Positions 10,493 through 59,453 of a DNA stretch of 63,913 nucleotides are shown here, one piece after another. Below the pieces are notes generated by a model. It ran no database searches, was not told where the DNA came from, and saw only the letters and a program-made list of their open reading frames with translations. The DNA comes from Octopus sinensis (lineage: Eukaryota), in contig NC_043025.1 of assembly GCF_006345805.1 (NCBI RefSeq), positions 3,410,088-3,474,000 on the forward strand. The letters run 5' to 3'. A program made the translations under genes and the position numbers. Every line of letters begins with the position of its first letter. The first letter of the stretch is position 1.

Positions 10493-10564
10493 ATATTTGC
10501 ATGATAATCGAATAAAAAACTATGAGGATGGTGCTTTCTTATTCCTCCCCAGCATAAGTCACAT
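10493..10564 (+). CDS. aGPCR exon: single leucine-rich repeat ([25 protein letters not shown])
   Basis: tttttcAG acceptor and GTAAGT donor. Exactly 72 nt (24 aa), phase 2-2, LxxNxIxxxxxGAFxxL pattern typical of one-repeat LRR exons. Confidence 0.9.
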
Positions 10565-13185
10565 GTAAGTAAAACGAATCTGCTTACTGGAAAATTAAGA
10601 TCTTATAGAAGAGATCATCAGTTTCTCAGTTCTTTGTGAAAGACAGATGACAATAAATAACGATGAATTGCTTTTAATTTTAGTGGTTCGAAATGGTTAT
10701 TTCCGAGTATTGTGTTTTATCATTGTAAATCTATGTTCAGATAGCATGAGGGTTGATTTAGCCTAATTTCATCCACGTTTATAAATATACATAATAAACT
10801 GGAGATGATATAATGGCCCAGACACATACATGCATAAATGCTTGTGTATGGGTATGTCTTGGGTCATCCCATAAATAATGCAGCTTTTAATCTTTTATTT
10901 TTCAAAATTAAGATAAACAAAGTTCTTTTTTAATCTAAAAATATACTCTCCTTCATTTTCTATAACGCTCTCCCATCTATCTGGTAGACTTGCGAGGCCC
11001 ATCTAAAATTCACTTGTCCGTGACAAAACATACCCCTCCAGTACTGTTCTGACCTCGTCTACAGAATTCATATGTTTTTCGGTCCAAATGATTTTGAAGA
11101 CTGTGGAATAAATGATAATCAGATGAGGCAATGTCCGGTGAATAAGGTGGGTGGGGTGACGTTTCCCATTCAAACTGCTCCAGCCTTTGGAATTTCAATC
11201 TTCTTGTATGTGGCCGAGAATTATCCTGATGGAAGAATACCTTTCGTCTTGAAACCAAAGATGGTGATTCTTCTTCTAGCGCTGAATTAATCTACTCAAG
11301 CTGCTTGTAGTAGTTCTCCTTTGTTATCGTTTGGTTTCCGGTTTAAAATCTCAAAGAGGATAACAGCACTTTACGTGGGTGGAGACCTTCTTTAGCCTGT
11401 GATTTCGTGGTGAAACCTTAAAAGCCAAGGGTTTAGTGCGGAATAATATGACAAATGTATTTGAAACAGACTGGATGGAATTATTTAACTGATGGGACTT
11501 CACCATCATTTTGTTTTTGTAAAAAATGTGAATCGTTCTTCCGGAGGAATTAAGAAAAGAATTAAAGAACATTTTTCTTATGAATTTGGTTTTTACACCA
11601 AACAAAGGCGAAGTTTCAAGTAAAAGAAAATTTTCTACCGGTATTTAAACCAAAAAGGACTGTACTTTTGTCAACGTCAAAACGAGTTAACGAAGAGTTG
11701 GATAGACTTGAAAAGCTTCGAGTTATTGAAAAACTTGACAACGCTGAATGGGTGTCCCCAACAGTTTATATCAAGAAAGAAGATCTGTGTATATGTTGAG
11801 TTTTCAACAGAGATAAACGAATATTTGATGCCATATAATTACCCCTTACCAAGTCCGGAAGAAATTTTCGCGAATCTGGAGGAAAAGTTTTTCGAAGTTG
11901 GACCTATCTGAAGCACAACTGCGGGTACAAGTTGATGAGAAATGTTCAAAATTACTAACGATAAATACCCATATAGGAGTGTATAAATTTAATCGACTTC
12001 CTTTTGGTATTAAGTTAGTACCAAGTAGGTTCCAGCAAGTTAGGGACACTATGCTCGCAGGTTCGGATTTCGCAATAGCGTATCCTGACAACATACTCAA
12101 AATAAGTGAATCTCGTGGTCAGCATGCTGAGCATGTTAAAAAGGTCTTCGAAAAAATAAAAGATTAAGTTTAGCGAAGAATACTGTGGATTTTTATGCCA
12201 AGAATAAAATATCTCGGGCAGGTTATAGATGAAAATAGACGTAGACCAGACCCGTCAAAGGCGAGTGCAATATAGAATATGCCTCCCCCGACAAACATTA
12301 CAACGTTACAAGCATTGGGTGGGGCTCGCAAATTACTACCAGGTACACATAGCGTATATGCATGATTTGAGAGCACCGCTGATTAACTTGTTAAAAGGAC
12401 GTTAAGTGGAACTGGTCGGACAAATGCCAAAATGATTTTAAAGAAATTAAAAGCATCTTAACGTCAGAATTGTCTTTATCACGTTTTGACCCGAATTTAG
12501 AAATGGTAGTGGCATCAAATGCTAGTAAAATTTGGTATTTGAGCTGTAATTTTACACAAATATGAAGATGGTATCGTGAAAGCTGTAGCTCGTGTTTTGC
12601 GTTCCTTATTTCCGGCTGAGAAAAGTTAGAGTCAAATAGAGAAAGAAACATCAGCCATGAAATCTGCGGTAAAGAAGTTCCATGAATTTATACATGGAAG
12701 ATGATTCCGTCTGCAGATAGACCACTGCTCATTATTCTACTTTCTGGTTTTGTGAAGCCTAATCTCTCAAGATTAGTATTTAGGTAGTGTGTTACATATC
12801 CCAGGGTCCTAATAATTACAGGTATAAACCTGAACTTGTAATCTGGATAGAGTAACCGCAAATTTCTTAATAGTTTATCGTAGGTATTTTCATTTTCGCA
12901 GATCTTCAGCTTTATGTTTATGTCCGCTGGGCAGCTGATTTCAACAACTCTGCACAATTTCTCTTCTCCATCCCAAATCACTATGTCAGGTTTGTTGTGT
13001 CTACATTTTATTGAGATTTTCACGGGGACATTACACCAGTACTCCTTTTTATTATGAGTGACTACGGCTTCCAGTATACTGTGAGTTTTATTTCTTGTCG
13101 TCCGGATTATCCGCGGAGCGAATCTCATTATACAGTATCGAAACTAAAACATCATATCTTAGTGTGTGTGTGTGTGTGTGTTGTG

Positions 13186-13216
<31 letters not shown>

Positions 13217-16200
13217 TGTGTGTGTGTGTTTGTGTATGTGTGTGTGTGTATGTGTATGTAGTTACCTAAAAATCAGGAAAAAAAAGAAGCACTGGGGGTC
13301 TGTTATTAGGCAATAAAATTGGTATATTAGTATAGTTTATTTAATGTTATATCATAGACCAAGGCAGCGAACCGGCAGAACCGTTAGCATGCTGGCCAAA
13401 AAGAAATGGTCGCCGACGTTTTGTTCGTGTTTATGTTCTGAGTTCAAATTACGCCGAGGTCGACTTTACCTTTCATCATTTAGAGATTGATAAATTAAGT
13501 ACCAGTTGAGGAGAGGGGCCGCTATAACCGACTTACACGCTTTGCTGGACTTGCTGGCCTTGTGCTAAAATTGAAGACGACGAGCTTGCAGAATCGTTAT
13601 CATGCTGGACAAAGTGCTTGGCGCTATTTCTTCCGTTTATACGCTCTGAGTTCAAATTCCGAGGCAATCTTTACTTTTCAGCCTTTCGGAGACGATAAGT
13701 TAAATACCAATCGCGTACTAAGGTGGATGTAATCGATAAGACCCCAGCCATAAATCTTCAGACATTGTGCTTGTAATAGAAAGAATATTATATTCTTGCG
13801 ATAACCAAATTACCGAATGGTTTCATGGTGGAAATGCAGAGGCAAAAGCAGCAACCATCAAACATGTCGGAATGGAAATGTTACGGATATTATTACTTTT
13901 GATAATTTGGTAATCATGTGAATATATCATAATAATAATAATAATAGTAATAATTATACATGTGTGTGTTTATGTACAAACTGGGTCATCCCATAAATAA
14001 TGCGTTTTTTCAGTTGCATGAACTACCTGCATCAACTTGTTATAAAAGCAGGTAGTAGTTCTACCTTGAACATATTCTTAGTGTAAGTTTTGAAGCGTGC
14101 AGTTCGATTTTAACAGTTATATTTTCAAAGCTATAATGGAAGTGACAAAGGAACATATTCGGCTTATTTTGCTTCATGAGTTCAATAAAGGCAACAATGC
14201 AATGGAAAGTGCGAGGAATAAGTTTAACCAGTGTCAACAATGGCGCCAAAACTTCCGAGTCGGAATCTACAGCCTAGAAGACAAGCCTCAACCAGGAAGA
14301 TCTGTAGAACTCGACGAGGACGTTCTGAAAAATTCCTTCGTAACTGTTGAGGAACTGGCAGATAAGCTTGGATTTGATCATTCAACCATTCTTCGACACC
14401 TGCGTGCCATCGGAAATGTCAGAGAATTGGGTCAATTGGTTTCCCTCAAACTTTCTGAGTTTAATTGCGCGGGAAGAATGAATCTGTGATCTTCTTTCAC
14501 GTCACGTCTCAAGAGTGAACCTTCTTTGAACCAAATAATGACTGGTGACGAGAAATGGGTTCTCTAGAAAAATGTCAAGCGCCGGAAGTCGATTAAATTT
14601 ATACACTCCTATATGGGTATTTATCGTTAGTAATTTTGAACATTTCTCATCAACTTGTACCCGCAGGTGTGCTTCAGATAGGTCCAACTTCGAAAAAAAT
14701 TTCCTCCAAATTCGCGAAAATTTCTTCCGGACTTGGTAAGGGGTAATTATATGGCATCAAATATTCGTTTATCTCTGTTGAAAACTCAACATATACACAG
14801 ACCTTTTTTCTTGATATAAACTGTTGGGGACACCCATTCAGCGTTGTCAAGTTTTTCAATAACTCGAAGCTTTTCAAGTCTATCCAATTCTTCGTTAACT
14901 CGTTTCGACGTTGACAAAAGTACAGTCCTTTTTGGTTTAAATACTGGTAGAACATTTTCTTTTGTTTGGTGCAAAAACCAAATTCATAAGAAAAATTTTC
15001 TTTAATTCTTTTCTTAATTCCTCCGGAAGAACCATTCACATTTTTACAAAAACAAAATGATGGTGAAGTCCCAAAAGTTAAATAATTCCATCCAGTCTGT
15101 TTCAAATACATTTGTCATATTATTCCGCACTAAACCCTTGGCTTTTAAGGTTTCTCCACGAAATGTCACATCACTTATCATTTTGCCCTTCAAATGCAAT
15201 TTTTTCCTGAAACATCACGTGCAATTTTCTAACTTTCTTTCGACCTATGTTTTCCGATTTTCTCCACGTATCTGCGTTTAGTGTTGTGATATCTCGGCAC
15301 GTATCCAATTGTAACTTGGCATTCCACATTATTCATTTTCAAGAACACAAATTTGCTTTTCTGAGCCTCGTTTAGATTGTTTTGTTAGCAATACTTTCTT
15401 CGAAGATTTTTATTCGTTCGAACTTTCTTTTCTCGCTCTGCGATGTGGGGTTTTATATCCGAATTTCCCAGACTCAAAATATTAAAAAGTTTTACAAGAC
15501 CAGTTACACTTAAAATGTAAGCCTCCGCACCAATAGTATGGATTGAGTCGTAACATTTGTTTTGCTTTTTTCTTATCCGTTACAGGTCTACTCGCATGAA
15601 TATGAGACCAGTCTTGTTCTACAGCTTTATCCGCATCATGTCTTAAATTTATAATGATCTGGAATTCCTCTACAACTGCCTCTATGTTATTAACCGAGCT
15701 TCTATGTTGTGTTTGGCATATTAGCTGAACAATGACGAGCCTTTTTTTCTCTTTGAGCTCTCGCCAGTATTCGCCTACTTGCTCCCCTATTGTGGGTGCT
15801 GTCTCCCCTTTGTAAGCTGTCTTGTTTCTGCACCGTCCTTCAATACTCCGTAAACTTTAGACTACATTCCTAATCTCACAGTTAACCTGTGCTTTCATAC
15901 TATGCAATTGTTTCCCGTACATGTAGGGACCTACCGAAGGAGTAAGTTCTACAGATCAAGATTTTATATGGGTTTCCGGCCTTTCTACTACTTTTATCCA
16001 TAGATTTTCCTTTTCTAAGATGGTATGCTTGTTCGCCATTTGGGTCAACATCAACGAAAATGACATTCTGTTATTTCTTGTTGTCATACCATGAGTTGGA
16101 CTTATCTATGTTTTTCCTGGTTCATTTGCATCCCGTTTCCATCACTTTTTATGATGGCCTTGTACTTAGCCCTGGCTTCTTTGTACACTCTAATCCTGTT

Positions 16201-19200: not shown

Positions 19201-22200
19201 AGAAATCCACTGTATACATTCATAGACCATTTAAATAAACACAACAGATTACGAAGGGAAGTTATGGCATGGAAAGAAGTGAAAGAAGAAGCACAGAATT
19301 GGTGTGCCATGCCATCATTATTGTTTAGAAAAAGCAGAAAATATTTAATGATATTTCGAAAAATAAACCTTTATCATTTTATTTTCTCCTTGCTAATTAT
19401 GAACATTCACGTGCATGTCTGCCATAGAAACTAAAAAAGAATACATCTCTGTACTTCTTCAGTTTCTGCAGTGGTACATCTCCAACCTTAAAGACAGCTG
19501 GTGCGTAGAACAATCACAGCGTTCCTAGTGCCACAACGTCCCGTTTAAATGTGTTTTAGTCAGAAACAATGGCCAGGTTGTTATTACCAAACCTCCGACA
19601 CCAAAACCGCCCTAAACCACCATAAAATGGAATCATTTCAAGTGACTAATAGTCTTCTCGCTTAAAGGCACTTTATTATTCAACAATGTTAGCTAAAAGA
19701 GAACAGGAACTTTATATGGTTCCACTTTCCAGTAAAAACCATTTCACATTATTGATGCTATCAGCATCTTTTGGAAAAAATAAACCTGAATGTCATAACT
19801 TTAATAAGCTTGCTCAAATTTTATAAACCTTGTTTCTTCTTAAATCAAACAGAAGTTTCTCTTTTGATCTGAAGCGTATTCAGTTAGAGTTCTCTTTATA
19901 ATTACAGCGACCTCAAAGGCAATAAGGATTTGATGTGTGGATGTCACCTGCCAGCCTTGGTGAAATATATGAGAAATAACTATAACAGAACTGTGAATGT
20001 CAGTGGCGAGTGTCAGTCAGATCTCGGCAAAAGAATACCAATACCGAAATATTCGCAATGTACAAGTTAGTAAAATCCTCCTTGTTTCTCTTGTTCTTTT
20101 ATTATTAACACAAAGAAAATTCCGGTTATTCTCTGCAGCTCACAATATAATGTCTTACGAAACAGGAACAACAGATACAGATATAAAGAAATAAACGTTT
20201 TACCATCCACACGCTTCACATATTCTTTCTGATGCATTTAAGGAGTCAACTGTATCACACAAACCCTAATTGACACACACACACACACACACACACACAA
20301 GCACACATAATGACACACACATACACACAACAGCGCACGCAGGCATGAATGGGCATTCACATACACACATGTACAGAGACACATCCTCCTTCTAACTCAC
20401 CCTCTCTCACATACATTCTCACTCACATCCGTACGACTACATAAGCATAGAACCAGAAGATAAGATTGATATTGAAGAGGTCATGAATGGCGACAAAATG
20501 TCTCTAACAACCATAACTGGTTGAGAGAATAATTCGTTAACAAATGATTAAACAAATTGACGAATCATAAAGAAGTGAAATTGAACAAGTGCGAGCGTTT
20601 TTTATTGGCATAATGACCTCCCGGAGGTACAATAAATGCTCTAGTATTCGATCCTCAGAAAAGGGCAGCTTGGTAAGAAAGCCTACCCTCATCTATGGAC
20701 ATGAATGTTGATTAACGACCGGAAGAGTGTGATCACAAAAAAACAGAGGCCGAAATTAATTTCCTCCGAAGAAACTCTAGAATAACACTACTTGACAGGG
20801 TCCATGCTTCGGAGATGACGGCGCCTCTCCAAACCGGCAGAACATCTAAGGGCAGACCAAGAACAAGATGGTGAGATAATATCCAGTTTCAGTCGGTCCC
20901 GTTCGAGAATCCAGCCAGAAAGTGTATTGACAATTGCTTTTGATAGGACCCTATGCATGAGGTACTTCAGGACTCTATCTTCATGACCCTCACTAGAATA
21001 ATGAACATAGAGGATGAACATATGGAGGAAAATGTGCAGTGTTCGGATTAAATATGACGATCTTTATATCCCATTTTTTCAGGAAAAGCTTAAGGTATTC
21101 GTGAACAGTCAATGGCGTTGGAGAGCATAAACATAAAGTTGTAGCTGAGAAAAATTTAGCTGACATGGAGAACTGGGATCCATCTGAATATTGGAAAACA
21201 GTCACATGTATCATTATGTTTCGTACCGGTTATCAAAATGCTAACATCATGCTTGCTGCTCAATGCTTTGTGAACAATGTAAAGACTGTAAGACGTGACA
21301 TGGAGAGATTCAGCAGAAACTAGAAGCTAAAATTCGAATGCGAGAAGAAAATTATTTGAGAAGATCAAATATCAAGACAAGATAAATTCCAAGAAACAAA
21401 AGAAAAATCAGGAATATAAAAAGTCTGACAAGATGGCACACTTCATGAAGATCAAATAATGTAGACGGTTCAATCAAGGCGTTGGTACACATGTGTGAAG
21501 AGAGGGTAAGAAAATGGGTGTCAGAAGGAGGAGAGAAGAGCAAAAGTGTTTTTTTATTGGAAGAAGAGTGAACACAATTAGTGAGAGACGGAAGAAGAGC
21601 GATTGCGTGGCGGTTATGTATATGGGAGTGAAATGGTTGCAGTTGATAGCGGCCAAGCAGTAATGAAAGGTAAAAGGAGGAGAGAGACGTGAATGAGTTA
21701 GAGGTACAAACCAAAGCAAGGTTTAAGAAAGTGAATGTGTGAGAGCACATGTGTGTGTGTGTGTCTGAAGAGTAAGTGTGCATGAATATGTCTGGGTCCA
21801 TGTACCAGTGTATACTTGTTTGTATGTATGTGTAAATGATAGAAGACGCTAGGGGAAGAGGTGTGCGTGTGTGTGTGTGTGATAAAGTATGAAGAGAGTA
21901 ACTATGATGACCGAGGTGAGATGTTTGTGTGTGTAAAATCTGCGGCGTGGGCAGGAATTGAAATCAAAAGTTGTATAAGTTTTGAGATAGAAGATATACA
22001 TCACTTTCCTGAAGAAATGGAGAATCCGGTGCTGAAGGTCAACTTGAAAATCGAGAGGCGTTGGGTAGAGTGGTCGGTGAAGCGGAAACATCGAGTGACT
22101 GGTGATGCTTTGCCAAGTAGGATGACTCTATGATACTTTAAGATGTCCTTGATATTATGGGCCAGTGTTCACCTAGATCGGATCACGAACAAGCCTTGTT

Positions 22201-42211: not shown

Positions 42212-42269
<58 letters not shown>

Positions 42270-42316
42270 CTATCTATCTATCGATCGATCTGTCTGTGTG
42301 TGTGTGTGTGTGTGTG

Positions 42317-42364
<48 letters not shown>

Positions 42365-42471
42365 GATCGATCTGTCTGTCTGTGTGTGTGTGTGTGTCTG
42401 TCTGTCTTTCTGTCTATCTATCTATCTATCTATCTATCCATCTACTGTCTATCTATCTATCTATCTATCCA

Positions 42472-42507
<36 letters not shown>

Positions 42508-42591
42508 TCTATCTTCTGTCTGTCTATCTGTCTGTCTATCTATCTACCTATCTATCTATTTATCTGTCTGTCTATCTGTCAGTCTGTCTAT

Positions 42592-42654
<63 letters not shown>

Positions 42655-42665
42655 CTGTATGTCTG

Positions 42666-42733
<68 letters not shown>

Positions 42734-42769
42734 CTGTATGTCTGTCTAACTATCTATCTACCTATCTAT

Positions 42770-42841
<72 letters not shown>

Positions 42842-43922
42842 GGAGGGGAGGTACGACGACGAGCTCGGGGCGAACCTGGACGTCGACGAGGAGTACCTGA
42901 CCCGCCTGTTCAGGACGACTTTCGGGCCAGGGCCCATGGACAACTTCCAGAGATCCCTGGCCTGGCAGTGCTACCGAGAAGCGCTACCCGTTCGGGATAA
43001 GCTCTACAGACACGGCTCGAGAAACACGGGGCCGACCTGCCCGAGATGCGGTCAGAGCGACGAAACCGTTCTGCACGCACTCGTGCAGTGTCCAACAATT
43101 TCCGACCTGTGGGCTTATGTCGAACAACTGCTGTCACGTGTGGGACGAGTCGGTTTATCAGCTGAGTCTATCGTCAATATTGTCACGCCTCCTTCCTTCA
43201 AACGGGAAGGAAGAGCTATTTTCATCATCCTTGTGGCTAAGACGAAAGAATGTATCTGGTGGACGCGTCTGAAAGGATTGGAGACAAACACTTTCCTCTC
43301 TGGTCAATCTCTCATCAACTTCTTCAAGTACCACTTGAAAAGGAAAGTGAGAGTAGAGAGGCAAGTTTTGTCTAGCGAATGTTTTAAAAAAAGATGGGTG
43401 AATGTAGCAAGGATGGCACGTATGAATGACGAAGCCACCTTGAGCATAATCCTATGAACCCAGAAATTGAAAACAGAGGGTTACCCACTTGCAAACAAAT
43501 GTGGTAACATATAACAATATTGACCAAGGTTACCGTGGTCTTTTTCGTAGGCTTTTCTTCCCACGGATAAATCTTACTTGCTTTCCCCTTTACACCATAT
43601 ATCATAACACTGTGATACACGATCCCTATTGATCGTTCTTTTTTTCCTCTTCCCTTTTTTTCCCCCTTTTTTCTTCTTTTTTCATTTCTCTTTCCTTTTG
43701 TTCCTTTTCCTTTTCTTTTTTTTCTCTTTTTATTCTTTTTATTTTATTCAATTTTTTTTTTGTTTTTGTTCTTTTCTTCCCTTTTACGATCCCTCTTGAT
43801 CGAAAACCTACGCCACCCCTTTATTTTTCTTTTGTTTTTTCTTCTCTTCATCCCCCAAAAGAAAAGCTCTACCTTGTAACTTGTCCCATCTGTGTGCAGC
43901 CCTGTGTGGCCAATAAAGAAAC

Positions 43923-43973
<51 letters not shown>

Positions 43974-44036
43974 CTGTCTGTCTGTCTATCTATCCATTTA
44001 TCTATCTATCATATCTATCTACGGACGCTCTCCCTG

Positions 44037-44092
<56 letters not shown>

Positions 44093-44318
44093 CTGTCTGT
44101 CTGTCTATCTATCCATTTATCTATCTATCATATCTATCTACGGACGCTCTCCCTGTCTATCTATCTATCTATCTATCTATCTTCTGTCTGTCTGTCTCCC
44201 TATCTATTTATTTATCATATCTATCTACGGTCACTCTCCCTGTCTATCTATCTATCTGTATGTCTGTATGTCTGTCTGCCTATCTATCTCTGTCTGCCTG
44301 CCTCTCTATCTACCTATC

Positions 44319-44392
<74 letters not shown>

Positions 44393-47300: not shown

Positions 47301-49440
47301 AAAATGTTACAAAACTTTGCGTATAGTAACATCGTTTTTAGAGAAATAACCGGTTTCGTATTTTCTTTTCAAATTTCTTTACCTACAGCTGCGGCCAAAA
47401 TGTTCAGAACGGCATTGTTTTCGTCAGAGAAGTAGGTATAATCTTTTTATCAAAGTTGTTTTAAATTTATAATTTTCACAGACAATAAATACGATATTAT
47501 TTGCTATTGTTTGAGATTTTGGTGTAATTTGAGAGGATAATACAAAAGTTATGGATGATTTAGTGATTTACTGCAAAACCCATGGCGGCCAAAATGATCA
47601 GATCGGTTGCTTTTACTCCGTGATTTAGTATATTTAACCGGCGAACTCCAATGTTTTGAATTTGTTTACGTGACGGTTCGTTTAGTAAGAATACCTGCAG
47701 TGTACTTTGTTAATATAATGCCATTTACTCCGTTCCAATTCGTCAGCAGATTATTAAGCTTCGAAAGAAGGATAATTTAAGTATTGGGTCTATTGTAAAG
47801 ATTGTTAACAAGTCAAAAAGTGTTGTTCACGGTATTCTTAAGGTCTACGATGATTGTGGTTCGTGTGAAGCAAGAAGGTCAACAGATAGTCCAAGAAAAA
47901 CGACCAAGATAGAAGATCGTGCAATGGTAAAGTTGGTTAAAAAGGACAGATTTAAAACTGCTGCTGTTTCTCGGGAAATGAGCATTGTACTGAAGAAAAC
48001 TTTATCTCGAAAAACTGTGTCTCGTCGTTAGTTGAAGATGACCTACAAGCAAGAACATCTTCAGTGAAGCTCCAAGAATAAAAAGTGTCGTCTTACCTTT
48101 GCAACCGAACATGTGTTGTGATCTCAAGAGAAATGGCAAATGGTGCATTTCAGTGATGAATCAAAGTTTGTTATTTGGCTCACAGATGGGAAAAGGTACG
48201 TTCGTCGAAAAGTTGGTGAAAAGTTGTCGCCTAAATGCCTTAAGACTAGTATTAAATTCGGTGGAGGAAGTGTCATGGTTTGGGGGATGATATCTGGAAA
48301 TGGTGTGGGTCCTTTGGTGCGATTACATGGAAAGGTAAATGCAGGAGTTTATAAACAACTTGTAAAAGATCATGTCTTGCCTGTGCTGAGAAATTCAACT
48401 AAGCGACCACCCATATTCATGCAGGACAACGCCCCATGTCACAAGGCTAAGGTGGTCATGAACTTCCTCAAGACTGAAAAGGTTATTGTTATGGATTGGT
48501 CTGCTCAAAGCCCAGATCTCAATCCTATGTGTGGAATATTCTAGGAGAACGTTCGAAAGCCAGAAATCCTAAAACAATCGAGCAATTATGGAATGCCCTT
48601 CAGGAAGAATGGAAGAAGATCATCCAGCAAGAAACTGAAAATTTAATTTCCTCATGCAGTCGAAGATGTCAAAGTGTGATTGAAGCTAAAGGGCTTCACA
48701 CTAAATATGAAATAATTCCAGTAGTCTCTGTCATTTTTGATTATTTTGTTATTGTTTCAACCGTTCTGATCATTTTGGCCGCCATGGGTTTTGCAGTAAA
48801 TCACTAAATCATCCATAACTTTTGTATTATCCTCTCAAATTACACCAAAATCTCAATTAATATCGTATTTATTGTCTGTGAAAATTATAGAATATAAAAC
48901 AATTTGATAAAAAATTATACCTACTTTTCTAACGAAAACAATTCCGTTCTTAACATTTTGGCCGCAACTGTATATCGTGTCATGTCTTCGCTATGTTGTG
49001 AAATATGGAGTTCCAGGCAGAGGAAGGTTATCAGGGATTTTTCTGGTATAAGGGAGATAATTAAACATGTTGGGAATGACTAGGCATGATTAACATGATT
49101 TGGTTTAGAAGGAATAGAATGTTTCAAGTAGTTAGGTTTTGCTTTATATTTTTTTCAATGAGGTGAGTTTCCTTATTTAAAAATGTTAGAAATGGTCAAG
49201 TTTTGGCTTATATTTTTCAATGATGAAGGTTTCCTTATTTAATCTAACTTGTCTTGGTGTTCCAATGGTACATTGATCGAATGGAAAGATTACAAATTGT
49301 GGTAGCAGTTTCTTGTTTTAAAATGAATTCGTTGAAAGTGTCGTGGAGAGGAGGTTGTTAATTGTTGGGTTTGTTAAGGAACATTGAGTTGAGGGTTCTG
49401 CATAAAAGCTGTAAGTCATTACTAACCTACATACACACAC

Positions 49441-49506: not shown

Positions 49507-49842
49507 TATATATTATATATATACAACCGATTATTGCAGATTGAGAACGAATTATCATCCTTGACGGGAACCTTCAGTGTTGAATATTGCAAGTAAGCAA
49601 AAACGTTTTTCACTTTTATTCAAATTTATTTATTTTTGCCTCAAAGAATCCAGAGTTATTTTTATCGAATGTATTAAATATTGCAATACTTAACAATGCT
49701 GTATTTGTGAACCACACTATACAAAATTTATTCTGCCAATCAAATGGCAAAGCGTTTTATCATGCAAAAGGCAATCACATACACGTATAGACGTACTGAG
49801 CGAAAATTTTCTCTCTCTCTCTCTCTCTAAATGTATACACAC

Positions 49843-50080: not shown

Positions 50081-50081
50081 A

Positions 50082-50114
<33 letters not shown>

Positions 50115-53100: not shown

Positions 53101-53170
53101 TGTTTTAATGTTGCGTTCTTGTTCCACTTTTTGGATTTGTATAAACTCCGTAGGAAATCAGCAGAGATAA

Positions 53171-53204
<34 letters not shown>

Positions 53205-54261: not shown

Positions 54262-54324
<63 letters not shown>

Positions 54325-54606
54325 GTATGTATATATGTATGTATGTATCAATGTATGTACGTATGTATTTATTAATTTTTATTTCAGTTCAGCAGAACGG
54401 AAAAATATATTTACTATATACAGTGAGGTGGTCAGAAATGTTACTAAAGATGAGCTGAGGCACAACATATATAATGTTATAAATTCATCCAAGACGCTGC
54501 AGGATTTGGAAATTCAACAGCAGAATATAGAATTAATTGATGAAAGTAGGACATAATTTTCTTATTATTTCTATCACAATTACCTTCATACTATTGCTAA
54601 CACAAT

Positions 54607-54647
<41 letters not shown>

Positions 54648-55532: not shown

Positions 55533-55566
<34 letters not shown>

Positions 55567-56429: not shown

Positions 56430-56496
<67 letters not shown>

Positions 56497-58985
56497 TTAC
56501 TACTAGTGGCTTTTACCATATACATGTTTTGCTTCTTTTCCAGGGTCTTGTAATGAAGACACAACCTCAAATAATGGTATTTTCCATTGGCCAGTGACGA
56601 AAATAGGAAGCAATGCGACGATTCCATGCCATGCAAATGTAGCAACGAGACTCTGGTTCGTTTCTATTGTTTCATTTCTTCTCAGAATCTGTAGTTTTCT
56701 GTGTCATCATATTATGAGAGAATGTTACATGGTAGAGGAAATAAAACGCCAAGAGAGATTAAGATGACGAGATTAATGTCCTTCGGTTGAAATCGCTTGT
56801 CAACAATTTTACATTTTATATGTTTTATATATTATATGTTTTATATATTATGTATTTTATGTATTATGTGTTTTATATATTATGTGTTTTGTAAGTGTTT
56901 TATATATTATGTGACACAATTTTGCTTTGGTCTAACTTCCAAGATTTGATTTGTTGCCAATATTAGACAAAGATTGAAGGCAAACTGGCAGAATCGTTAA
57001 CTCGTCAGGCGAAATGTTTAGCAGCGCTTCGTCTGTCTTTATGTTCTGATATCAAATTCCGTCGAGGTTAACTTTGCCTTTTCTCCGTAGGAATCGATAA
57101 AATATGCCCCTTTTGAGCATTGGGGTAGGTGCAATAGACTTAGCCTCCCCTCCAAAATGGTTGGTCTTGTGCCAACATTTGAAAGCAATATTTAACAAAA
57201 CATCAGCTCGTCCAGTTGGAAAATTCATTTTATATTTATTTTGAGGATCGGAATCTGGAATAAATAATAGACGTCTTACAAAAACGCATTACACTATTTA
57301 CTCTTCTTTCACTAGATTATGAGTTCAAATCCCAACCAGGTCTATGATCTCTTCATTACTCTGAGATTGATGAGAGAATGTCTTACATTTATTTTTTCAG
57401 TTCTTCCAGGACGGTGAAGCATCCAGAAATGGCATCAAACCAATCTAGGACATCACTAAAATGTTCACCATTTACTGGTATCTGGCAAGAACCAGACATG
57501 TCACAATGTTACAATACTGAGGGGATCACTCGACGACTAAAAGACATCAGAAGCCAAGACATTGATCAAAGTAAGCGAGTGATTATGATTCGAAATACTT
57601 TTACTGTATATGTATGTGTCTTTGCATTTCTCCTTCCTTACGACCACCATATACGTGTGTGTTTGTTGCTAATTAATATTTTATCTTTCAAGCGGTAGCA
57701 CCCTTTTCAGTTCTCCAGCAATATATTCATCTCGTCCAATTGCAGATCAATTGATTCACTTATGGAATCGTTATGACACATTTTATTAATTAGGAGAGTT
57801 GCGTCTATTTTTATATCGTTAAAACTACTCCTTCCTTAACTTTCTGCCGATGGGCTGACTACATAGAGAAGTAGAAAAACAACAAAGATAGTTACTGGTA
57901 CATACTTCTCCGCATACATTATGTTGGGTTATAAATCTACAATGACGCTGTCCACATAGCTGTTTATCATAGAAAATGAGCAATTTACCACTCTCAAGTG
58001 TTATTATGCGCTGTAAAATTGAAGATATTTTCATAGGCACACAGTCATTTGATGACTTCACTTTCTTTTAAAAATCTTGATGAAAACCTTTCAATTTTAC
58101 TCTTTAGATTGAGGAAGTGAGGTGGCAGAATCGTTAGCAGGTCGGGTGAAGGAAGTGCTTGGCGGCATTTCGTCTGTCTTCACTTTCTGAGTTCAAATTC
58201 CGCTGAGGTTCACTTTATCTTTCATCCTTTCGGAGTCGAGCATTGGGGGTCAATGTAACTGACTTACACCCTCCCCCACAATTGCTGGCCTTGTGTCAAA
58301 ATTTGAAGCCAATATTATTCCTTAGAACAGCGACCCTTTTTCGTTTAGATTCACCTTGGCATTGGAAAAATAATTGCGTTGAAATTAATGGCGGTTTATG
58401 ATGGTTGGTGTATCGCAGTTCATTGATTGTCAATGATATTACGTACAAACACCCTTCCACCACCGTCAAGTGTCTGCCTTACTCACCTATAAAGGGATCC
58501 CTAGTGTTGCGTAACTGCCCCGCTGTTCCAGTTAATGTTACAGTGCAGGGGCCCCTAAGACTGTATAACGATGAACTGAACAACCGATGAACTGAACACA
58601 TTAAGTTCCTTAAAGCTGGAGTCGTTAATTAACTTCCGGTGATTCATTAATTGTTTTGTGACATTTAATTTGCGTTTAATGTTTGAACTCAAATCGATTG
58701 TAATTCCATTAAATTTCATGTTAAATTTTTCATTGCAGGGAATATCGCCAATATTTCGAAAGAGGCATTGAATGTTTCGCAGAAATCAGTGTATTTCAAA
58801 CAACAAGATATTGACTTGGCTGTAGATATTCTCGAGAAAATTGTGCCATTGAACGCATCGGCTGACACAAGACTGAAAATTATACGTGGTATAAACAATA
58901 TAATAAACACACCAGAGAAGGTTTTGGCTGAGGCAGAACTATCTAATAGAAGTATCAGCAGGTAATATTCAAATCTGTTTTCTGT

Positions 58986-59021
<36 letters not shown>

Positions 59022-59453
59022 AAAGAAGAAGAAGAAGAAGAAGAAGAAGAAGAAGAAAGAGAGAGAAAAAGAAAAGTAGCAGTAGCCGAAGCCATATTTG
59101 GAGCGGCACAAATAATAAAATTTGCTGCATCAACGCTAACCTAGCAACAACGAAAGTAGTAGAAGCATCAGTAGCATACAAGCCTTGTTAGCTAAGCTAA
59201 TTAGTGTAATTACACCTATAGCTAATTACGTATTAGAAGCACACTGTTAATTAAAAATCGTTTTCTTGATTTTCTCTTCAGAATGCTGGGCATTATAAAA
59301 ATATTGCCAAAAACAATTCCACTGGAAGAGCAGCAAGTCAACGTTTTATACTCAAATCTTGGTATTGGTGTTTCCAAAGTGAATCAGGATAGTTTCGATG
59401 GTCTTTTCTATGGCGTTTCCTACGGAACTAATGAAACGGAAGCAAACACACAG
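10493..59453 (+). CDS. Partial multi-exon adhesion GPCR (LRR-LRRCT-LU/three-finger-like-SEA-like-HRM-GAIN), 11 exons in window
   Basis: Manual splicing of 10493-10564, 19908-20065, 23652-23743, 27879-28062, 46090-46172, 49540-49592, 54388-54545, 56544-56655, 57401-57570, 58739-58961 and 59282-59453. All introns are GT..AG, phases chain 2-2-1-0-1-0-2-1-2-1-2-0 with no stop, and the protein has 15 NxS/T sequons. The HRM motif (C..WPxT..G..AtipC..R.C..GiW.ePDmSqC) is followed by GAIN-A-like helices resembling ADGRG2/G4/G6. Confidence 0.88.
10858..11401 (-). mobile_element. Mariner transposon 3' half (TIR at left end)
   Basis: [22 protein letters not shown] and [16 protein letters not shown] on the minus strand; TIR gggtcatcccataaataatgc. 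Confidence 0.9.
11402..12720 (+). mobile_element. Gypsy pol fragment (RT/RNase H), degenerate
   Basis: [58 protein letters not shown] and VASNAS..GI motifs. Confidence 0.9.
12720..13085 (-). mobile_element. R4/Dong-like LINE 3' fragment (RLE domain)
   Basis: [24 protein letters not shown]...[21 protein letters not shown]. Confidence 0.85.
13361..13790 (+). mobile_element. Two tandem degenerate tRNA-derived SINE copies (13361-~13540, ~13574-13790)
   Basis: ggcgagctggcagaa..gttagc head, gagttcaaattc B-box and cctttcatc..gataaattaagtaccag core, matching the intact copy at 41488-41717. Confidence 0.8.
13980..14583 (+). mobile_element. Mariner transposon 5' half (TIR at left end)
   Basis: TIR ctgggtcatcccataaataatgcg; [46 protein letters not shown]. 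Confidence 0.9.
14584..15560 (-). mobile_element. Gypsy gag/protease-RT fragment, including an inverted copy of 11402-12001
   Basis: 14584-15164 is the reverse complement of 11402-12001 with scattered substitutions and one ~19-nt indel, then continues into upstream protease-like sequence. Confidence 0.85.
15570..17040 (-). mobile_element. Penelope-like element (RT to GIY-YIG), degenerate; same family as 35485-36690
   Basis: [36 protein letters not shown]....RIRVYK.A and GIY-YIG remnants on the minus strand. Confidence 0.85.
18290..19130 (-). mobile_element. R4/Dong-like LINE RT fragment
   Basis: [26 protein letters not shown] and MEFGVSRCA motifs. Confidence 0.85.
19908..20065 (+). CDS. aGPCR exon: LRR C-terminal cap ([52 protein letters not shown])
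   Basis: ctctttataattacAG acceptor and GTTAGT donor. 158 nt, phase 2-1, DLxGN then CxC...C...C four-cysteine LRRCT pattern. Confidence 0.9.
20640..22140. mobile_element. Degenerate RTE-like LINE fragments (about 20640-21240 minus, about 21340-22140 plus)
   Basis: Broken YGSE(T/M)W-like, GRP..RW.D.I and YL(K/S)YLGS-like remnants; heavily decayed. Confidence 0.5.
22560..22780 (+). repeat. Dispersed repeat also present at 39348-39782 (both orientations) and about 46940-47200
   Basis: Shared string aaaatgaccat(t/c)ccgaaatacaacaat..tgtttcaacac..cttcacat. Confidence 0.7.
23652..23743 (+). CDS. aGPCR exon: first part of LU/three-finger-like domain ([31 protein letters not shown])
   Basis: ttatgttctctAG acceptor and GAG/GTAAAC donor. 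92 nt, phase 1-0, opens with the CxxC typical of LU domains. Confidence 0.85.
24190..26620 (+). mobile_element. Degenerate L1/Tx1-like LINE (ORF2 remnants)
   Basis: [24 protein letters not shown]-like and 3' [17 protein letters not shown] remnants homologous to 42841-43457. Confidence 0.7.
27290..27510 (+). mobile_element. tRNA-derived SINE
   Basis: aaggtggcgagctggcagaatcg head and cctttcatcctttcgaggtc core. Confidence 0.85.
27879..28062 (+). CDS. aGPCR exon: second part of LU/three-finger-like domain (PVCRLTLS...[17 protein letters not shown])
   Basis: ctattcttacAG acceptor and G/GTAAGT donor. 184 nt, phase 0-1, ends in the CCxxxxCN signature of Ly6/uPAR domains. Confidence 0.9.
28940..29578 (+). 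mobile_element. Non-autonomous Helitron-like (Lep1/HINE-type) element, family A
   Basis: 5' tactagcagtatcgcccggcgttgctcggg and 3' acagacactcacacaactacagttttatatatatagat; inverted copy at 53683-54207. Confidence 0.65.
29660..30182 (-). mobile_element. Mariner fragment (5' portion)
   Basis: [48 protein letters not shown]. Confidence 0.85.
31630..31693 (-). ncRNA. Type-I hammerhead ribozyme motif with intact core
   Basis: Minus strand: CCAC CUGAAGA AUGUCU-(25 nt)-AGACAU GAAA C-GAUC-G UA GUGG. Stem I 4 bp, stem II 6 bp, palindromic helix III, GUA cleavage triplet. Confidence 0.8.
32718..33597 (-). mobile_element. Internally deleted mariner with both TIRs and TA target duplication
   Basis: TA-ttgagtcatcccattaataatgcg ... 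cgcaatatttatggtacgacccaa-TA; HTH and HPPYSPD/DYHLF remnants. Confidence 0.9.
34341..37840. mobile_element. Penelope-like element with a 5' inversion and ~1.15-kb inverted terminal arms
   Basis: Arms 34341-35484 and 36668-37840 are reverse complements. Minus-strand RT piece 35485-35658 ([10 protein letters not shown]). Plus strand 35659-36686: [12 protein letters not shown], thumb, [21 protein letters not shown] with one frameshift near 36400. Confidence 0.9.
37868..39135 (+). mobile_element. Non-autonomous Helitron-like element, family B
   Basis: actagcattatgacccgg 5' end, internal sequence shared with 51216-52398, and 3' gtaaggcatgtgtaaaatttgaatgaaattg..acacagaca. Confidence 0.6.
39348..39782. 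repeat. ~205-bp fold-back inverted repeat with 24-nt spacer
   Basis: 39348-39553 is the reverse complement of 39578-39782 with scattered mismatches. Confidence 0.9.
39830..40772 (+). mobile_element. Gypsy integrase remnant, PPT, LTR (40493-40760) and PBS-like sequence
   Basis: [24 protein letters not shown] motif; ttaaaggggaga-TGTAG...AACA followed by gtggcgatgagg. Confidence 0.75.
40790..42210. mobile_element. RTE-clade LINE, 5' truncated with inversion (minus 40790-42000, plus 42000-42210)
   Basis: Minus: [15 protein letters not shown]-terminus and [23 protein letters not shown]. Plus: TNGVK and RAKSKVKE...[11 protein letters not shown] segment. Confidence 0.85.
41488..41717 (-). mobile_element. 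Full-length tRNA-derived SINE with a perfect 14-bp TSD
   Basis: gtcaacctaatact at 41474-41487 and 41718-41731; head aaggcggcgagctggcagaaacgttagcacgccgggcgaaatgcg; B-box gagttcaaattccgcc. Confidence 0.92.
42212..44450 (+). mobile_element. 5'-truncated Tx1/L1-like LINE (42841-43920) embedded in a (TCTA)n tract
   Basis: Open zf-RVT-like [39 protein letters not shown] ending at 43457; pyrimidine-rich 3' UTR; AATAAA at 43912; (TCTA)n on both sides. Confidence 0.88.
44450..44930 (+). mobile_element. Penelope-like GIY-YIG fragment
   Basis: [26 protein letters not shown] motif. Confidence 0.7.
45290..45960 (-). mobile_element. Possible highly degenerate Penelope-like RT fragment
   Basis: Weak resemblance of minus-strand ORFs to PLE RT motif 3 region; no clean motif. 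Confidence 0.35.
46090..46172 (+). CDS. aGPCR exon: SEA-like module part 1 ([28 protein letters not shown])
   Basis: tatccttccatAG acceptor and GTGAGT donor. 83 nt, phase 1-0, the phase needed to link exon 4 to exon 6. Confidence 0.75.
47386..48970 (+). mobile_element. Full-length inactive Tc1-family transposon with long IR/DR termini and TA TSD
   Basis: TA-cagctgcggccaaaatg...cattttggccgcaactg-TA; ~220-bp TIRs; [24 protein letters not shown] and SPDLNP motifs; stops and frameshifts. Confidence 0.95.
49430..50130. repeat. (TA)n/(TG)n/(TATG)n microsatellite cluster surrounding exon 6
   Basis: Direct dinucleotide and tetranucleotide runs. Confidence 0.9.
49540..49592 (+). CDS. aGPCR exon: SEA-like module part 2 ([18 protein letters not shown])
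   Basis: ttattgcAG acceptor (weak pyrimidine tract) and AA/GTAAGC donor. 53 nt, phase 0-2, bridges its neighbours in frame. Confidence 0.7.
51216..52398 (+). mobile_element. Non-autonomous Helitron-like element, family B, second copy
   Basis: 5' hairpin ctagcattatgacccg/cgggtcatagtgctag, homology to 37868-39135, internally duplicated 3' block and acagacagac..ttttatatata end. Confidence 0.65.
53683..54207 (-). mobile_element. Non-autonomous Helitron-like element, family A, inverted copy
   Basis: Reverse complement of 28940-29578 with internal indels. Confidence 0.7.
54388..54545 (+). CDS. aGPCR exon: SEA-like module part 3 ([52 protein letters not shown])
   Basis: ttttatttcAG acceptor and A/GTAGGA donor. 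158 nt, phase 2-1, amphipathic beta-alpha-beta pattern. Confidence 0.8.
56544..56655 (+). CDS. aGPCR exon: HRM domain part 1 ([38 protein letters not shown])
   Basis: gcttcttttccAG acceptor and TG/GTTCGT donor. 112 nt, phase 1-2, C..WPxT..G....C HRM motif. Confidence 0.92.
56977..57195 (+). mobile_element. tRNA-derived SINE (degenerate) in the 745-nt intron between the HRM exons
   Basis: ggcaaactggcagaatcgttaac..caaattccgtcgagg..tttgccttt. Confidence 0.75.
57401..57570 (+). CDS. aGPCR exon: HRM part 2 and start of GAIN ([10 protein letters not shown]...[31 protein letters not shown])
   Basis: attttttcAG acceptor and A/GTAAGC donor. 170 nt, phase 2-1, GxWxxPDxSxC motif. Confidence 0.92.
58118..58320 (+). 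mobile_element. tRNA-derived SINE (degenerate)
   Basis: gaggtggcagaatcgttagcagg..gagttcaaattccgctgagg..ctttcatcctttcgg. Confidence 0.8.
58739..58961 (+). CDS. aGPCR exon: GAIN subdomain A helices ([35 protein letters not shown]...AELSNRSIS)
   Basis: tttttcattgcAG acceptor and AG/GTAATA donor. 223 nt, phase 1-2, DIxxxVxxLEKIV and NxxxxxxxxL helical pattern of ADGRG-type GAIN-A. Confidence 0.9.
59282..59453 (+). CDS. aGPCR exon: end of GAIN-A and start of GAIN-B ([58 protein letters not shown])
   Basis: tttctcttcAG acceptor and CAG/GTACCA donor. 172 nt, phase 2-0, NL(G/A)IxV...FxGL strand motif. Confidence 0.9.

Follow-up and report, generated by a model that had tools for sequence, protein, structure and literature searches.

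Eleven internal exons of an octopus adhesion GPCR gene encoding an LRR-LRRCT-LU-SEA-HRM-GAIN ectodomain

Results

Can short coding segments dispersed over about 49 kb of octopus DNA belong to one receptor gene, and what kind of receptor would that be? The stretch analyzed here (hereafter, the window) is 63,913 nucleotides long, and the original prediction chained such segments into a hidden adhesion GPCR (aGPCR) gene. In our reading, the window holds 11 consecutive internal exons of a single octopus aGPCR gene of the group 3 family, orthologous to LOC118768405 plus LOC118768404 and to the O. vulgaris 'ADGRG6-like' gene, to which we assign a probability of approximately 0.85. The underlying observation was confirmed, and the interpretation given with it was partly supported.

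The exon chain

The chain was rebuilt independently from the sequence, which gave the following exons between 10493 and 59453.

10493-10564, + strand: last leucine-rich repeat (LRR), 72 nt; phase 2 on both sides; AG/GT; tblastn P0005, P0015
19908-20065, + strand: LRRCT cap; phase 1 out; tblastn P0005, 96% identity, E 5e-29
23652-23743, + strand: LU (Ly6/uPAR three-finger), first exon; phase 1 in, 0 out; tblastn
27879-28062, + strand: LU, second exon, ending CCVGNLCN; phase 0 in, 1 out; tblastn P0005, 94%, E 4e-35
46090-46172, + strand: SEA-like 1 (beta1 and start of alpha1); phase 1 in, 0 out; tblastn P0021, P0023, P0025
49540-49592, + strand: SEA-like 2 (end of alpha1 and beta2); phase 0 in, 2 out; tblastn P0007, P0010
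54388-54545, + strand: SEA-like 3 (beta3, alpha2, beta4); phase 2 in, 1 out; tblastn P0022, E 2e-11
56544-56655, + strand: HRM (hormone-receptor motif) 1; phase 1 in, 2 out; tblastn P0001, 97% identity
57401-57570, + strand: HRM 2 and linker into GAIN; phase 2 in, 1 out; tblastn P0005, P0001, 96%, E 1e-31 to 1e-33
58739-58961, + strand: GAIN subdomain A, exon a (helices); phase 1 in, 2 out; tblastn P0001, 91%, E 1.5e-30
59282-59453, + strand: GAIN exon b (end of subdomain A and start of the next part); phase 2 in, 0 out; tblastn P0017, 95%, E 3e-35

These exons sum to 1477 nt, that is, one base finishing a codon followed by 492 stop-free codons; both outer coordinates and the number of codons agree exactly with the original prediction. 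As it had also stated, the splice sites are canonical, with a pyrimidine tract and AG before and GT after each of the 11 exons, and the intron phases agree over every junction. A total of 492 codons is reached only with the acceptor at 57401, not 57410, and the RefSeq ortholog also uses 57401, giving LCSS.... When octopus proteins were used in tblastn, each of the 11 exons was matched with E-values down to 1e-35. Each junction is present in at least one annotated model among the octopus models compared: the LRR, LRRCT, LU, HRM, and GAIN junctions are used in P0005, P0017, and P0001, the junction that leads into the SEA cassette and both of its inner junctions in P0031, and the SEA-to-HRM junction in paralogs such as P0029 and P0018. 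The 11 exons are real, and the chain is far beyond chance.

The spliced product contains 22 Cys and 15 N-glycosylation sequons (NxS/T), in line with the predicted Cys pattern and heavy glycosylation, and the introns do contain transposon remnants (RVT_1, Mos1 HTH, zf-RVT, DDE_3). The three SEA exons total 294 nt and constitute an in-frame cassette. All borders of the LRRCT, LU, SEA, HRM, and GAIN modules lie in phase-1 introns, which fits an exon-shuffling assembly and permits in-frame skipping of whole domains.

Domain identities

No Pfam family reached its gathering threshold on the window's own spliced protein. Pfam LRR_8 gave E 1.5e-3 on the spliced window protein and 2e-11 on ortholog P0005. 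Pfam LRRCT gave no match; the LRRCT exon was read from the sequence by its four-Cys pattern CGC...C...C, and paralog P0046 carries the UniRef name 'LRRCT domain-containing protein'. The LU profile searched against the PDB matched LYPD1 (E 5.4e-9), LYPD6 (2e-6), SLURP-1 (2e-3), and LYPD6B, followed by an activin receptor and snake toxins. LYPD1 aligned with it from end to end, with Cys in register and the CC....CN signature at the end. The octopus-family LU possesses 12 conserved Cys columns (10 invariant and 2 in ≥90% of sequences) in an alignment spanning octopus, other molluscs, an annelid, and echinoderms, whereas the LYPD1/LYPD6/SLURP-1 type has 10. Those proteins are small, single-domain, and GPI-anchored or secreted, while the octopus LU sits as one inner module within a large receptor.

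The next domain is, judging from its predicted fold and profile comparisons, a divergent SEA domain. The AF2 model of ortholog P0031 exhibited pLDDT >90 across it with the order beta-alpha-beta-beta-alpha-beta, and Pfam SEA was the sole recurrent family on such segments. Further, hhalign gave 95.5% probability against other lophotrochozoan segments, and an HH link leads to mollusc segments that themselves match Pfam SEA. Pfam HRM was the top match in 9/9 family segments, and on the window segment it gave E 1.1e-3 (19.7 bits, profile positions 7-64 of 66). The HRM-GAIN family profile matched only one solved structure, the GAIN of ADGRG6 (6v55, E 1.2e-5). The proposed LRR-LRRCT-LU-SEA-HRM-GAIN parse of an aGPCR ectodomain is supported for each of its domains.

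Orthologous loci and the downstream GPS

Collinearity of the window extends through the introns, both against O. sinensis LOC118768405 plus LOC118768404 (96-98% nt) and against the O. vulgaris 'ADGRG6-like' gene (92-94%). In the O. sinensis locus all 22 splice dinucleotides are kept without gaps; the LRR exon corresponds to 15401-15472 of L003, the exons 23652-23743 (LU) and 57401-57570 (HRM) are identical, and SEA-like exons 1 and 2 are conserved and open. GAIN exon a is intact in the window and in O. vulgaris, and carries a 1-bp deletion (frameshift) in the O. sinensis assembly copy, which may be an assembly error and because of which the O. sinensis ortholog is split into two models. That the gene is hidden, as had been supposed, is not supported, since its orthologs are already annotated, though public annotations break it into pieces or omit the SEA exons. 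P0005 unites the LRR, LRRCT, LU, HRM, and GAIN-a exons and skips the SEA exons, and P0031 unites the LU and SEA exons.

Past the end of the window, the next exon follows after about 300 bp, at 15284-15475 of L001 (window position 63708 corresponds to L001 14765). In O. vulgaris, ortholog P0001 starts at HRM and continues across GAIN and GPS (CSCDHLTSFALLMDV, Pfam GPS E 1e-12) to TM1, on exons located 10-24 kb further downstream than the counterpart of GAIN exon b. This GPS, which is outside the window, reads HL|T followed by the tethered-agonist-like TSFALLMDV. The downstream GPS-7TM that the original prediction asked for was found in this ortholog as far as TM1; TM2-7 were not found in the 12 kb beyond TM1 in O. 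vulgaris, and P0175 is a candidate for them without an assigned genomic place. Full-length paralogs P0055, P0056, and P0051 carry LRR_8, GPS, and 7tm_2 together with LU and SEA HMM matches, and P0061 is an unbroken 3.5-kb ORF from LRR through 7tm_2 on a 4.2-kb Logan contig, which is taken to be a transcript.

Discussion

Three other explanations were weighed against a single functional gene. Names found in databases, such as 'slit homolog 1-like', 'decorin-like', and 'LYPD1-like', would suggest a secreted LRR-LRRCT-LU-SEA protein with a distinct HRM-GAIN-7TM receptor gene after it, and many public paralog models cover only the N-terminal or only the C-terminal part. O. vulgaris P0001 also begins at HRM, and P0029 and P0034 terminate in the intron past HRM exon 1 like a short secreted isoform. 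However, neither a stop codon nor a terminal exon occurs between the SEA and HRM exons of the window, where all phases fit; the RefSeq model P0005 spans LU to HRM-GAIN, the full-length paralogs and the intronless contig hold all domains in a single ORF, and the 1-bp deletion accounts for the O. sinensis split. Two genes are accordingly very unlikely. It is somewhat easier to imagine, though still improbable, that these are relic exons left by a recent duplication within a large tandem family, and that no receptor is made from them. The frameshift in O. sinensis GAIN exon a would fit such decay, as would an exon identity to O. sinensis (about 95.7%) not above that of introns, a dN/dS of 0.51 across the whole chain and near 1 for the LRR and LRRCT exons, and substitutions concentrated in the LRR exon and SEA exons 1 and 2. 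Those substitutions are few, and dN/dS has low power here because the species compared are too close. The window copy, moreover, retains 492/492 open codons, 22/22 intact splice sites, and the conserved Cys, Trp, and motifs such as GWT.SF.F, and the frameshift concerns an exon that is intact in O. vulgaris.

An ADGRA (GPR124/GPR125) ortholog with its Ig domain swapped for LU and SEA is the least credible alternative. ADGRA2/ADGRA3 do share the N-terminal LRR and LRRCT and the HormR-GAIN ahead of the 7TM, several family members have precomputed Pfam matches to PF26588 (GAIN_ADGRA3), and NCBI named one paralog 'ADGRA3-like'. In contrast, Ig is absent from the octopus protein, where LU and SEA take its place, and the 7TM of paralog P0055 scored 163-169 bits (E about 1e-47 to 1e-48) against ADGRG2/G4/G6 and ≤110 bits against other PDB aGPCRs (ADGRL3, E 1e-30), in a PDB set containing no ADGRA 7TM. 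By this sequence comparison, the 7TM of family paralogs appears closest to ADGRG2/G4/G6, not ADGRA. The earlier comparison with ADGRG6 (GPR126), which carries SEA ahead of HRM/GAIN, was apt, as the membrane-proximal SEA-HormR-GAIN-7TM order is common to both and the GAIN profile and HL|T site point the same way. They differ in the N-terminus (CUB-PTX in ADGRG6, LRRNT-LRR-LRRCT-LU in octopus), in gene number (one ADGRG6 gene versus dozens of tandem paralogs in Octopus), and in the SEA itself, which is very divergent in octopus and in the window copy reads CNSAERK at the turn between beta2 and beta3, without a G|S cleavage motif.

For the single-gene reading, the signal peptide, LRRNT, and more LRRs would lie upstream of the window, which itself encodes the last LRR, LRRCT cap, LU, divergent SEA, HormR, and helical GAIN subdomain A; the remaining GAIN with the GPS site, and then a complete 7TM, would follow downstream. 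By analogy with relatives and known aGPCRs, the LRR solenoid and LU may serve to bind a protein ligand or a partner in the matrix, and GAIN may undergo self-cleavage at HL|T. This would expose TSFALLMDV as a new N-terminus, which could activate a 7TM of the ADGRG2/4/6 type as its tethered agonist once the extracellular fragment is displaced or pulled on.

Ritschard et al. 2019 (PMC6408891) described an octopus aGPCR expansion, 'group 3', treated as octopus-specific, with GPS and adhesion 7TM, LRR in 5/22 sequences, co-localized genes, and enrichment in axial nerve cord, suckers, and skin. The present family, tandemly expanded and octopus-rich, is identified with group 3 because the Death-domain member A0A0L8FLR8 (P0154) occurs both in their group B-3 table and in our match set. 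The arrangement, which had been called unrecognized, exists in public full-length O. bimaculoides proteins of exactly the same layout (e.g., XP_052827273.1, XP_014773211.1). Oyster and Aplysia proteins contain LRR, LU, SEA, HRM, GPS, and 7TM; abalone, whelk, scallop, zebra mussel, and tubeworm have at least the LU-SEA core ahead of GPS and 7TM, the core thus also occurring in an annelid; and echinoderms and a hemichordate show LU, a mucin-like linker, and HRM. A mollusc- or cephalopod-specific class had been proposed; given these proteins, the layout is not cephalopod-specific, and it is to some extent already common among annotated bilaterian aGPCRs. In the InterProScan table of PMC6408891, Ly6/uPAR, SEA, and hormone-receptor domains have 0 occurrences, and we found no recognition of LU and SEA in these receptors in the literature or annotations. 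The presence of LU and SEA in the ectodomain looks to be the undescribed part, and the present analysis adds the LU-SEA-HRM module and the relatives outside cephalopods to the group 3 picture.

Reconstruction of the Eleven-Exon Chain

The window is AT-rich eukaryotic DNA with abundant microsatellites and transposon remnants, across which the original prediction had drawn an eleven-exon chain of 492 codons. The exon chain was rebuilt independently, since the prediction carried no exon coordinates, and both its ends and its codon count were reproduced. All exons listed below lie on the + strand and are bordered by AG and GT in compatible phase.

Table. Exons of the receptor gene in the window.
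10493–10564, +, exon 1 (LRR)
19908–20065, +, exon 2 (LRRCT)
23652–23743, +, exon 3 (LU exon 1)
27879–28062, +, exon 4 (LU exon 2)
46090–46172, +, exon 5 (SEA exon 1)
49540–49592, +, exon 6 (SEA exon 2)
54388–54545, +, exon 7 (SEA exon 3)
56544–56655, +, exon 8 (HRM exon 1)
57401–57570, +, exon 9 (HRM exon 2)
58739–58961, +, exon 10 (GAIN exon a)
59282–59453, +, exon 11 (GAIN exon b)

The joined exons comprise 1477 nt, which is one base closing a codon followed by 492 stop-free codons, and the spliced protein contains 22 Cys and 15 NxS/T sequons. This codon count is reached only with the acceptor at 57401, whose use yields the peptide found in the database orthologs. An acceptor at 57410 was rejected; it loses the Cys of LCSS and conflicts with the ortholog models. 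Every exon in the window was matched by octopus proteins using tblastn (E down to 1e-35), and 22 of the 22 splice dinucleotides are kept, ungapped, in O. sinensis. The chain is not a product of chance. Each junction is also present in at least one public model. The O. sinensis ortholog model P0005 uses the LRR, LRRCT, LU, HRM, and GAIN-a junctions, while the junction from GAIN-a to GAIN-b is used by P0017 (O. sinensis) and P0001 (the O. vulgaris “ADGRG6-like” ortholog). P0031, an O. bimaculoides ortholog model, uses both internal SEA junctions as well as the one leading into the SEA cassette, and paralogs use the SEA-to-HRM junction.

The LRRCT|LU, LU|SEA, SEA|HRM, and HRM|GAIN boundaries are all phase-1 introns (20065/23652, 28062/46090, 54545/56544, and 57570/58739, respectively), and the three SEA exons form a cassette of 294 nt. 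Public ortholog and paralog models that skip SEA (P0005 and P0006) or both SEA and HRM (P0020) remain in frame. Judged from intron phase, such modules are consistent with exon shuffling as the mode of assembly and with possible isoforms that skip domains; alternatively, the domain-skipping models may simply reflect annotation gaps. O. sinensis does have the three SEA exons skipped by P0005, with open frames and correct borders.

Two peculiarities of the public models touch on intron sequence of the window. Reading through the donor that follows HRM exon 1 (window 56656–56764) gives the same peptide that ends the paralog models P0029 and P0034 (“WFVSIV...”), which hints at intron retention, a short secreted isoform, or a common annotation artefact. 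P0031 owes its N-terminus to translation of the intron immediately 5′ of LU exon 1; the ORF in question also occurs in the window at 23600–23651, and this N-terminus is false, being an annotation artefact.

Table. Transposon remnants and repeats in the window.
123–440, 11829–12164, 14094–14486, 42750–43454, and 48122–48541, transposon remnants (RVT_1 twice, Mos1-type HTH, zf-RVT, and DDE_3 of Tc1/mariner type)
34336–35484 and 36668–37844, inverted repeat arms, ~1.15 kb each, 95–99% complementary
8647–9184, 30288–30672, 42151–43000, and 43892–44680, long microsatellite-like arrays

All transposon remnants except the first (123–440) are located inside introns of the receptor gene. The inverted repeat arms are rich in microsatellite-like sequence and enclose a 1.18-kb core with ORFs at 35653–36411 and 36372–36683, of which the latter contains a motif reminiscent of GIY-YIG endonucleases and gave no Pfam match at E ≤ 1e-3. 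The microsatellite-like arrays generate spurious ORFs of 100–260 aa (“YLSIYLSI” and “CMYVCMYV” repeats) in several frames.

Domain Architecture of the Ectodomain

Pfam applied to the spliced protein alone gave one sub-threshold LRR_8, and the domains were therefore called with family profiles. Together with domain-by-domain tests, these bore out the predicted order LRR-LRRCT-LU-SEA-HRM-GAIN. LRR_8 matched the only repeat within the window at E 1.5e-3, the ortholog P0005 at 2e-11, and a paralog at 1.7e-58. The paralogs P0035 and P0040 possess a signal peptide followed by LRRNT and about eight LRRs. P0035 resembles IGFALS (1e-89) and LGR4 (1e-51), as well as LGR5. A putative LRRCT was called from its four-Cys pattern and the UniRef name of the paralog P0046; the Pfam LRRCT family gave no match.

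For the Ly6/uPAR three-finger (LU) domain, 18 segments were aligned that came from octopus and further molluscs, from an annelid, and from echinoderms. They share 12 conserved Cys columns, ten of them invariant and two occupied in at least 90% of the sequences, and the domain ends in CC-x4-CN. The resulting profile matched LYPD1 (5.4e-9), LYPD6 (2.1e-6), SLURP-1 (2.3e-3), and LYPD6B in the PDB, and all nine PDB matches listed are three-finger folds. The Pfam families Toxin_TOLIP, UPAR_LY6_2, and Activin_recp were detected on LU at sub-threshold level only, and the AF2 model of the domain was unreliable (pLDDT about 30). This disulfide framework and the similarity to LU proteins argue for assignment as a Ly6/uPAR domain.

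The segment between LU and HRM was accepted as a divergent SEA domain on profile and model evidence. An AF2 model of the ortholog P0031 gave pLDDT >90 for residues 110–208, with the order beta-alpha-beta-beta-alpha-beta. Pfam SEA was the only recurrent family, being detected in 2 of 13 octopod segments (best 3.5e-4) and in 3 of 9 LU-to-HRM segments from other molluscs and an annelid (best 1.4e-6), while the window’s own segment gave no Pfam match. Iterated HMM searching did not reach the non-cephalopod relatives, but profile–profile comparison did, aligning the octopod with the other lophotrochozoan segments at 95.5% probability (hhalign, E 1.5e-8). No SEA entry ranked among the top 50 Foldseek matches of the SEA-like model; the folds recovered were exclusively generic ferredoxin-like ones (E >1e-3). 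A sequence-profile search of the PDB gave nothing meaningful. The autoproteolysis motif G|S[VI]VV is missing at the beta2–beta3 turn of the window copy, where many paralogs have YCGS followed by a loop of 4–6 residues in place of a strand.

A set of models (P0021, P0024, P0025, P0027, P0028, and P0043) continues from HRM into a second SEA-like domain and a short terminal peptide, “...SSSTGNGTEDRTAETNF”, and several O. sinensis models of this type share the 17-Mb contig of the ortholog. They may represent alternative 3′ exons encoding a secreted LU-SEA-HRM-SEA form, or chimeras of neighbouring tandem paralogs. No exons for this HRM–second SEA–terminal peptide type were seen in the window.

All 9 of the 9 family segments had the hormone-receptor motif as their top Pfam family (best 7.2e-6). 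In the window, the match spanned profile positions 7–64 of 66 (E 1.1e-3), and its 19.7 bits fell short of the 26.2-bit cut-off. The invariant columns of the family include C3, W16, C29, C38, C59, W66, and C74. A sequence search of the PDB with the HRM profile gave nothing meaningful. The profile match and the Cys/Trp framework point to a HormR domain.

GAIN, GPS, and 7TM Regions

The GAIN exons in the window encode subdomain A only. A family profile spanning HRM, GAIN, and GPS matched one solved structure, ADGRG6, across GAIN (E 1.2e-5), and Pfam GAIN was detected in P0002 (8e-4) and in the relative P0074 (2e-9). AF2 gave no usable subdomain B; for the helical part, the best Foldseek matches were the GAIN domains of BAI3 and BAI2 (E 0.016), obtained with a model that was poor overall (pLDDT 45). 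The GPS lies outside the window. In O. vulgaris, the ortholog P0001 runs through CSCDHLTSFALLMDV (Pfam GPS, E 9.7e-13) into TM1, its GPS exon being located at 38455–38634 of the locus sequence (L002), ~23 kb after the GAIN-b equivalent, and its further exons 10–24 kb beyond that equivalent. The predicted HL|T cleavage site and a putative tethered-agonist sequence are hence present in this ortholog.

For the 7TM of the window gene itself, TM1 alone was seen, in the O. vulgaris ortholog. Exons for TM2–7 were not found in the 12 kb downstream in O. vulgaris, and a 7TM-only model (P0175) could not be placed. Full-length paralogs gave 7tm_2 matches with E 1e-24 to 1e-42, and in the family a GAIN domain immediately precedes the 7TM. 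The predicted identity as an adhesion GPCR (aGPCR) is well supported at the family level by GPS and 7tm_2 in these paralogs and by the GAIN profile. When the 7TM of the full-length paralog P0055 was compared with the PDB, ADGRG2 (1.1e-48), ADGRG4 (7.7e-48), and ADGRG6 (8.3e-47) ranked highest, with a large gap to ADGRL3 (1.1e-30) and ADGRG3 (1.4e-30). This similarity ranking, made on one paralog and distinct from a phylogeny, suggests that the 7TM is closer to the G2/G4/G6 clade.

An assignment to ADGRA was also considered, and was rejected on this 7TM similarity to the aGPCR structures available in the PDB. The ectodomain differs as well; ADGRA has an Ig domain between LRRCT and HormR, whereas the octopus receptor has LU and SEA in that interval, and no Ig family appeared in any Pfam scan. 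The N-terminal part likewise departs from that of ADGRG6, which carries CUB and pentraxin domains, while only LRR families were detected by Pfam N-terminal to LU in the full-length members.

Orthologous Loci and Patchy Divergence

Across introns as well as exons, the window aligns collinearly with O. sinensis CM016887.1 at ~3.09–3.16 Mb (96–97.7% at the nucleotide level) and with O. vulgaris OX597843.1 (92–94%). The gene had been described as hidden, which does not apply to its orthologs; these are annotated in sister species, though divided into two models in O. sinensis, LOC118768405 (P0005) and LOC118768404 (P0017). This RefSeq split falls together with a 1-bp deletion (GAAAAT-GTGCC) that the O. 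sinensis assembly GCA_006345805.1 carries in GAIN exon a (window 58851, and about 9944 in the O. sinensis locus sequence L001). The deletion occurs neither in the window nor in O. vulgaris, and may be either an error of assembly or a genuine frameshift.

Both ends of the gene are truncated by the window. The next exon is located ~300 bp beyond the window end (L001 15284–15475). At the other end, positions 1–9080 are not collinear with O. sinensis (compared with 9000–13988 of the locus sequence L003), and the O. sinensis LRR exon that precedes exon 1 (L003 12355–12426) has no counterpart in the window. A scan of 1–10492 for LRR exons of the AG-72 nt-GT form gave nothing credible; the preceding exon was either moved past the window start by an insertion or lost.

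Within the part contained in the window, the copy is intact throughout. Against O. sinensis, dN/dS was 0.51 (41 nonsynonymous and 21 synonymous changes), and the exons were no more conserved than the introns. The differences are concentrated in the LRR exon (10493–10564; 12 of 72 nt) and two SEA exons (46090–46172, 13 of 83; 49540–49592, 8 of 53), which are 15–17% divergent between flanking introns of ~95–97% identity, and none occurred in LU exon 1 and HRM exon 2. In SEA exon 1, the family consensus (GWT.SF.F) is retained in the window and departed from in O. sinensis. Such patchy divergence, together with the frameshift, is possible under decay of the O. sinensis locus, gene conversion among tandem paralogs, or positive selection.

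Family Members, Other Taxa, and Published Records

With an alignment of the database relatives as query, 114 matches were obtained among 1.84 billion representative proteins. These matches include full-length O. bimaculoides proteins that combine LRR_8, GPS, and 7tm_2 with LU and SEA HMM matches, such as XP_052827273.1, XP_014773211.1, and the XP_014788728.1 cluster, one member also having a Death domain. The cluster of P0051, P0153, and P0154 matches the family profile with E 5e-115 and has LU and SEA HMM matches. A further member, P0061, comprises 1155 aa in an uninterrupted ORF, encoded on a Logan contig of 4.2 kb that lacks introns (L004, SRR21372857_4053, 4201 bp); it has LRR_8, LU and SEA HMM matches, GPS, and 7tm_2, and is only about 46% identical to P0055. 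This contig is probably a transcript of another cephalopod. The size and layout of P0061 are similar to those of a Euprymna member of the published expansion described next.

Ritschard et al. (2019, PMC6408891) reported an octopus-specific class-B expansion, “group 3”, characterized by GPS and the adhesion 7TM. Of its 22 sequences, 5 had LRRs and one had a Death domain; the genes were co-localised, with enrichment in the axial nerve cord, suckers, and skin (PMC6408891). The protein A0A0L8FLR8, which has the Death domain and is listed in their group B-3 supplementary table (PMC6408891), is the family member P0154, and the family has therefore already been published as group 3. The InterProScan table of that study contains no Ly6/uPAR, SEA, or hormone-receptor entries (PMC6408891), a 2026 consortium review of aGPCRs does not mention Ly6/uPAR, and a full-text literature search gave no paper in which adhesion GPCRs are treated together with Ly6 or UPAR_LY6. 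From these three sources, the LU and SEA content of the family appears to be undescribed within the limits of the literature searched.

The receptor had also been proposed as possibly a mollusc- or cephalopod-specific class. Restriction to cephalopods was contradicted by oyster and Aplysia proteins with the same layout (LRR, LU, SEA, HRM, GPS, and 7TM) and by the LU-SEA core ahead of GPS and 7TM in abalone, whelk, scallop, zebra mussel, and a tubeworm. In proteins of sea urchins, a starfish, and an acorn worm, the LU is followed by a linker rich in Ser/Thr/Pro, after which comes HRM-GAIN-7TM. The window gene is one paralog of the published expansion with an ectodomain richer than annotated, and belongs to a wider invertebrate LRR-LU type of aGPCR related to ADGRG2/4/6.

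Implications for the Receptor Family

In a receptor of this layout, the LRR-LU head would bind a partner, GAIN would cleave itself at HL|T, and TSFALLMDV may act as a tethered agonist on the G2/4/6-type 7TM once the extracellular fragment is displaced.

The window result itself is ordinary, being one of many paralogs that are annotated already in sister species. Classification of aGPCRs relies largely on ectodomain modules, and no LU-bearing aGPCR is known from vertebrates, nor is a Ly6/uPAR domain known from any human member. An invertebrate branch with LRR, three-finger, and SEA-HormR-GAIN domains extends the set of known aGPCR modules by one, and the LRR-LU receptors suggest a route by which the ADGRG6-type core acquired different N-terminal binding heads. 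The published octopus expansion, described as LRR, GPS, and 7TM only, gains a more complete domain map, and fragments of these receptors account for many Octopus database entries under the names “slit homolog-like”, “decorin-like”, or “LYPD1-like”.

A broader reading is tentative, and we give it a probability of roughly 35%. The layout LRR-LU-(SEA)-HormR-GAIN-7TM would be an old, unnamed branch of ADGRG2/4/6 type, occurring in molluscs and an annelid, with a mucin-like linker replacing SEA in echinoderms and hemichordates. In octopods, this branch would have been amplified to dozens of tandem genes, whose phase-1 modules would permit in-frame skipping of SEA or HRM and so yield a combinatorial repertoire. 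If this is true, suckers and the arm nervous system would be served by a combinatorial set of surface receptors from this family, which would bear comparison with the expansion of protocadherins.
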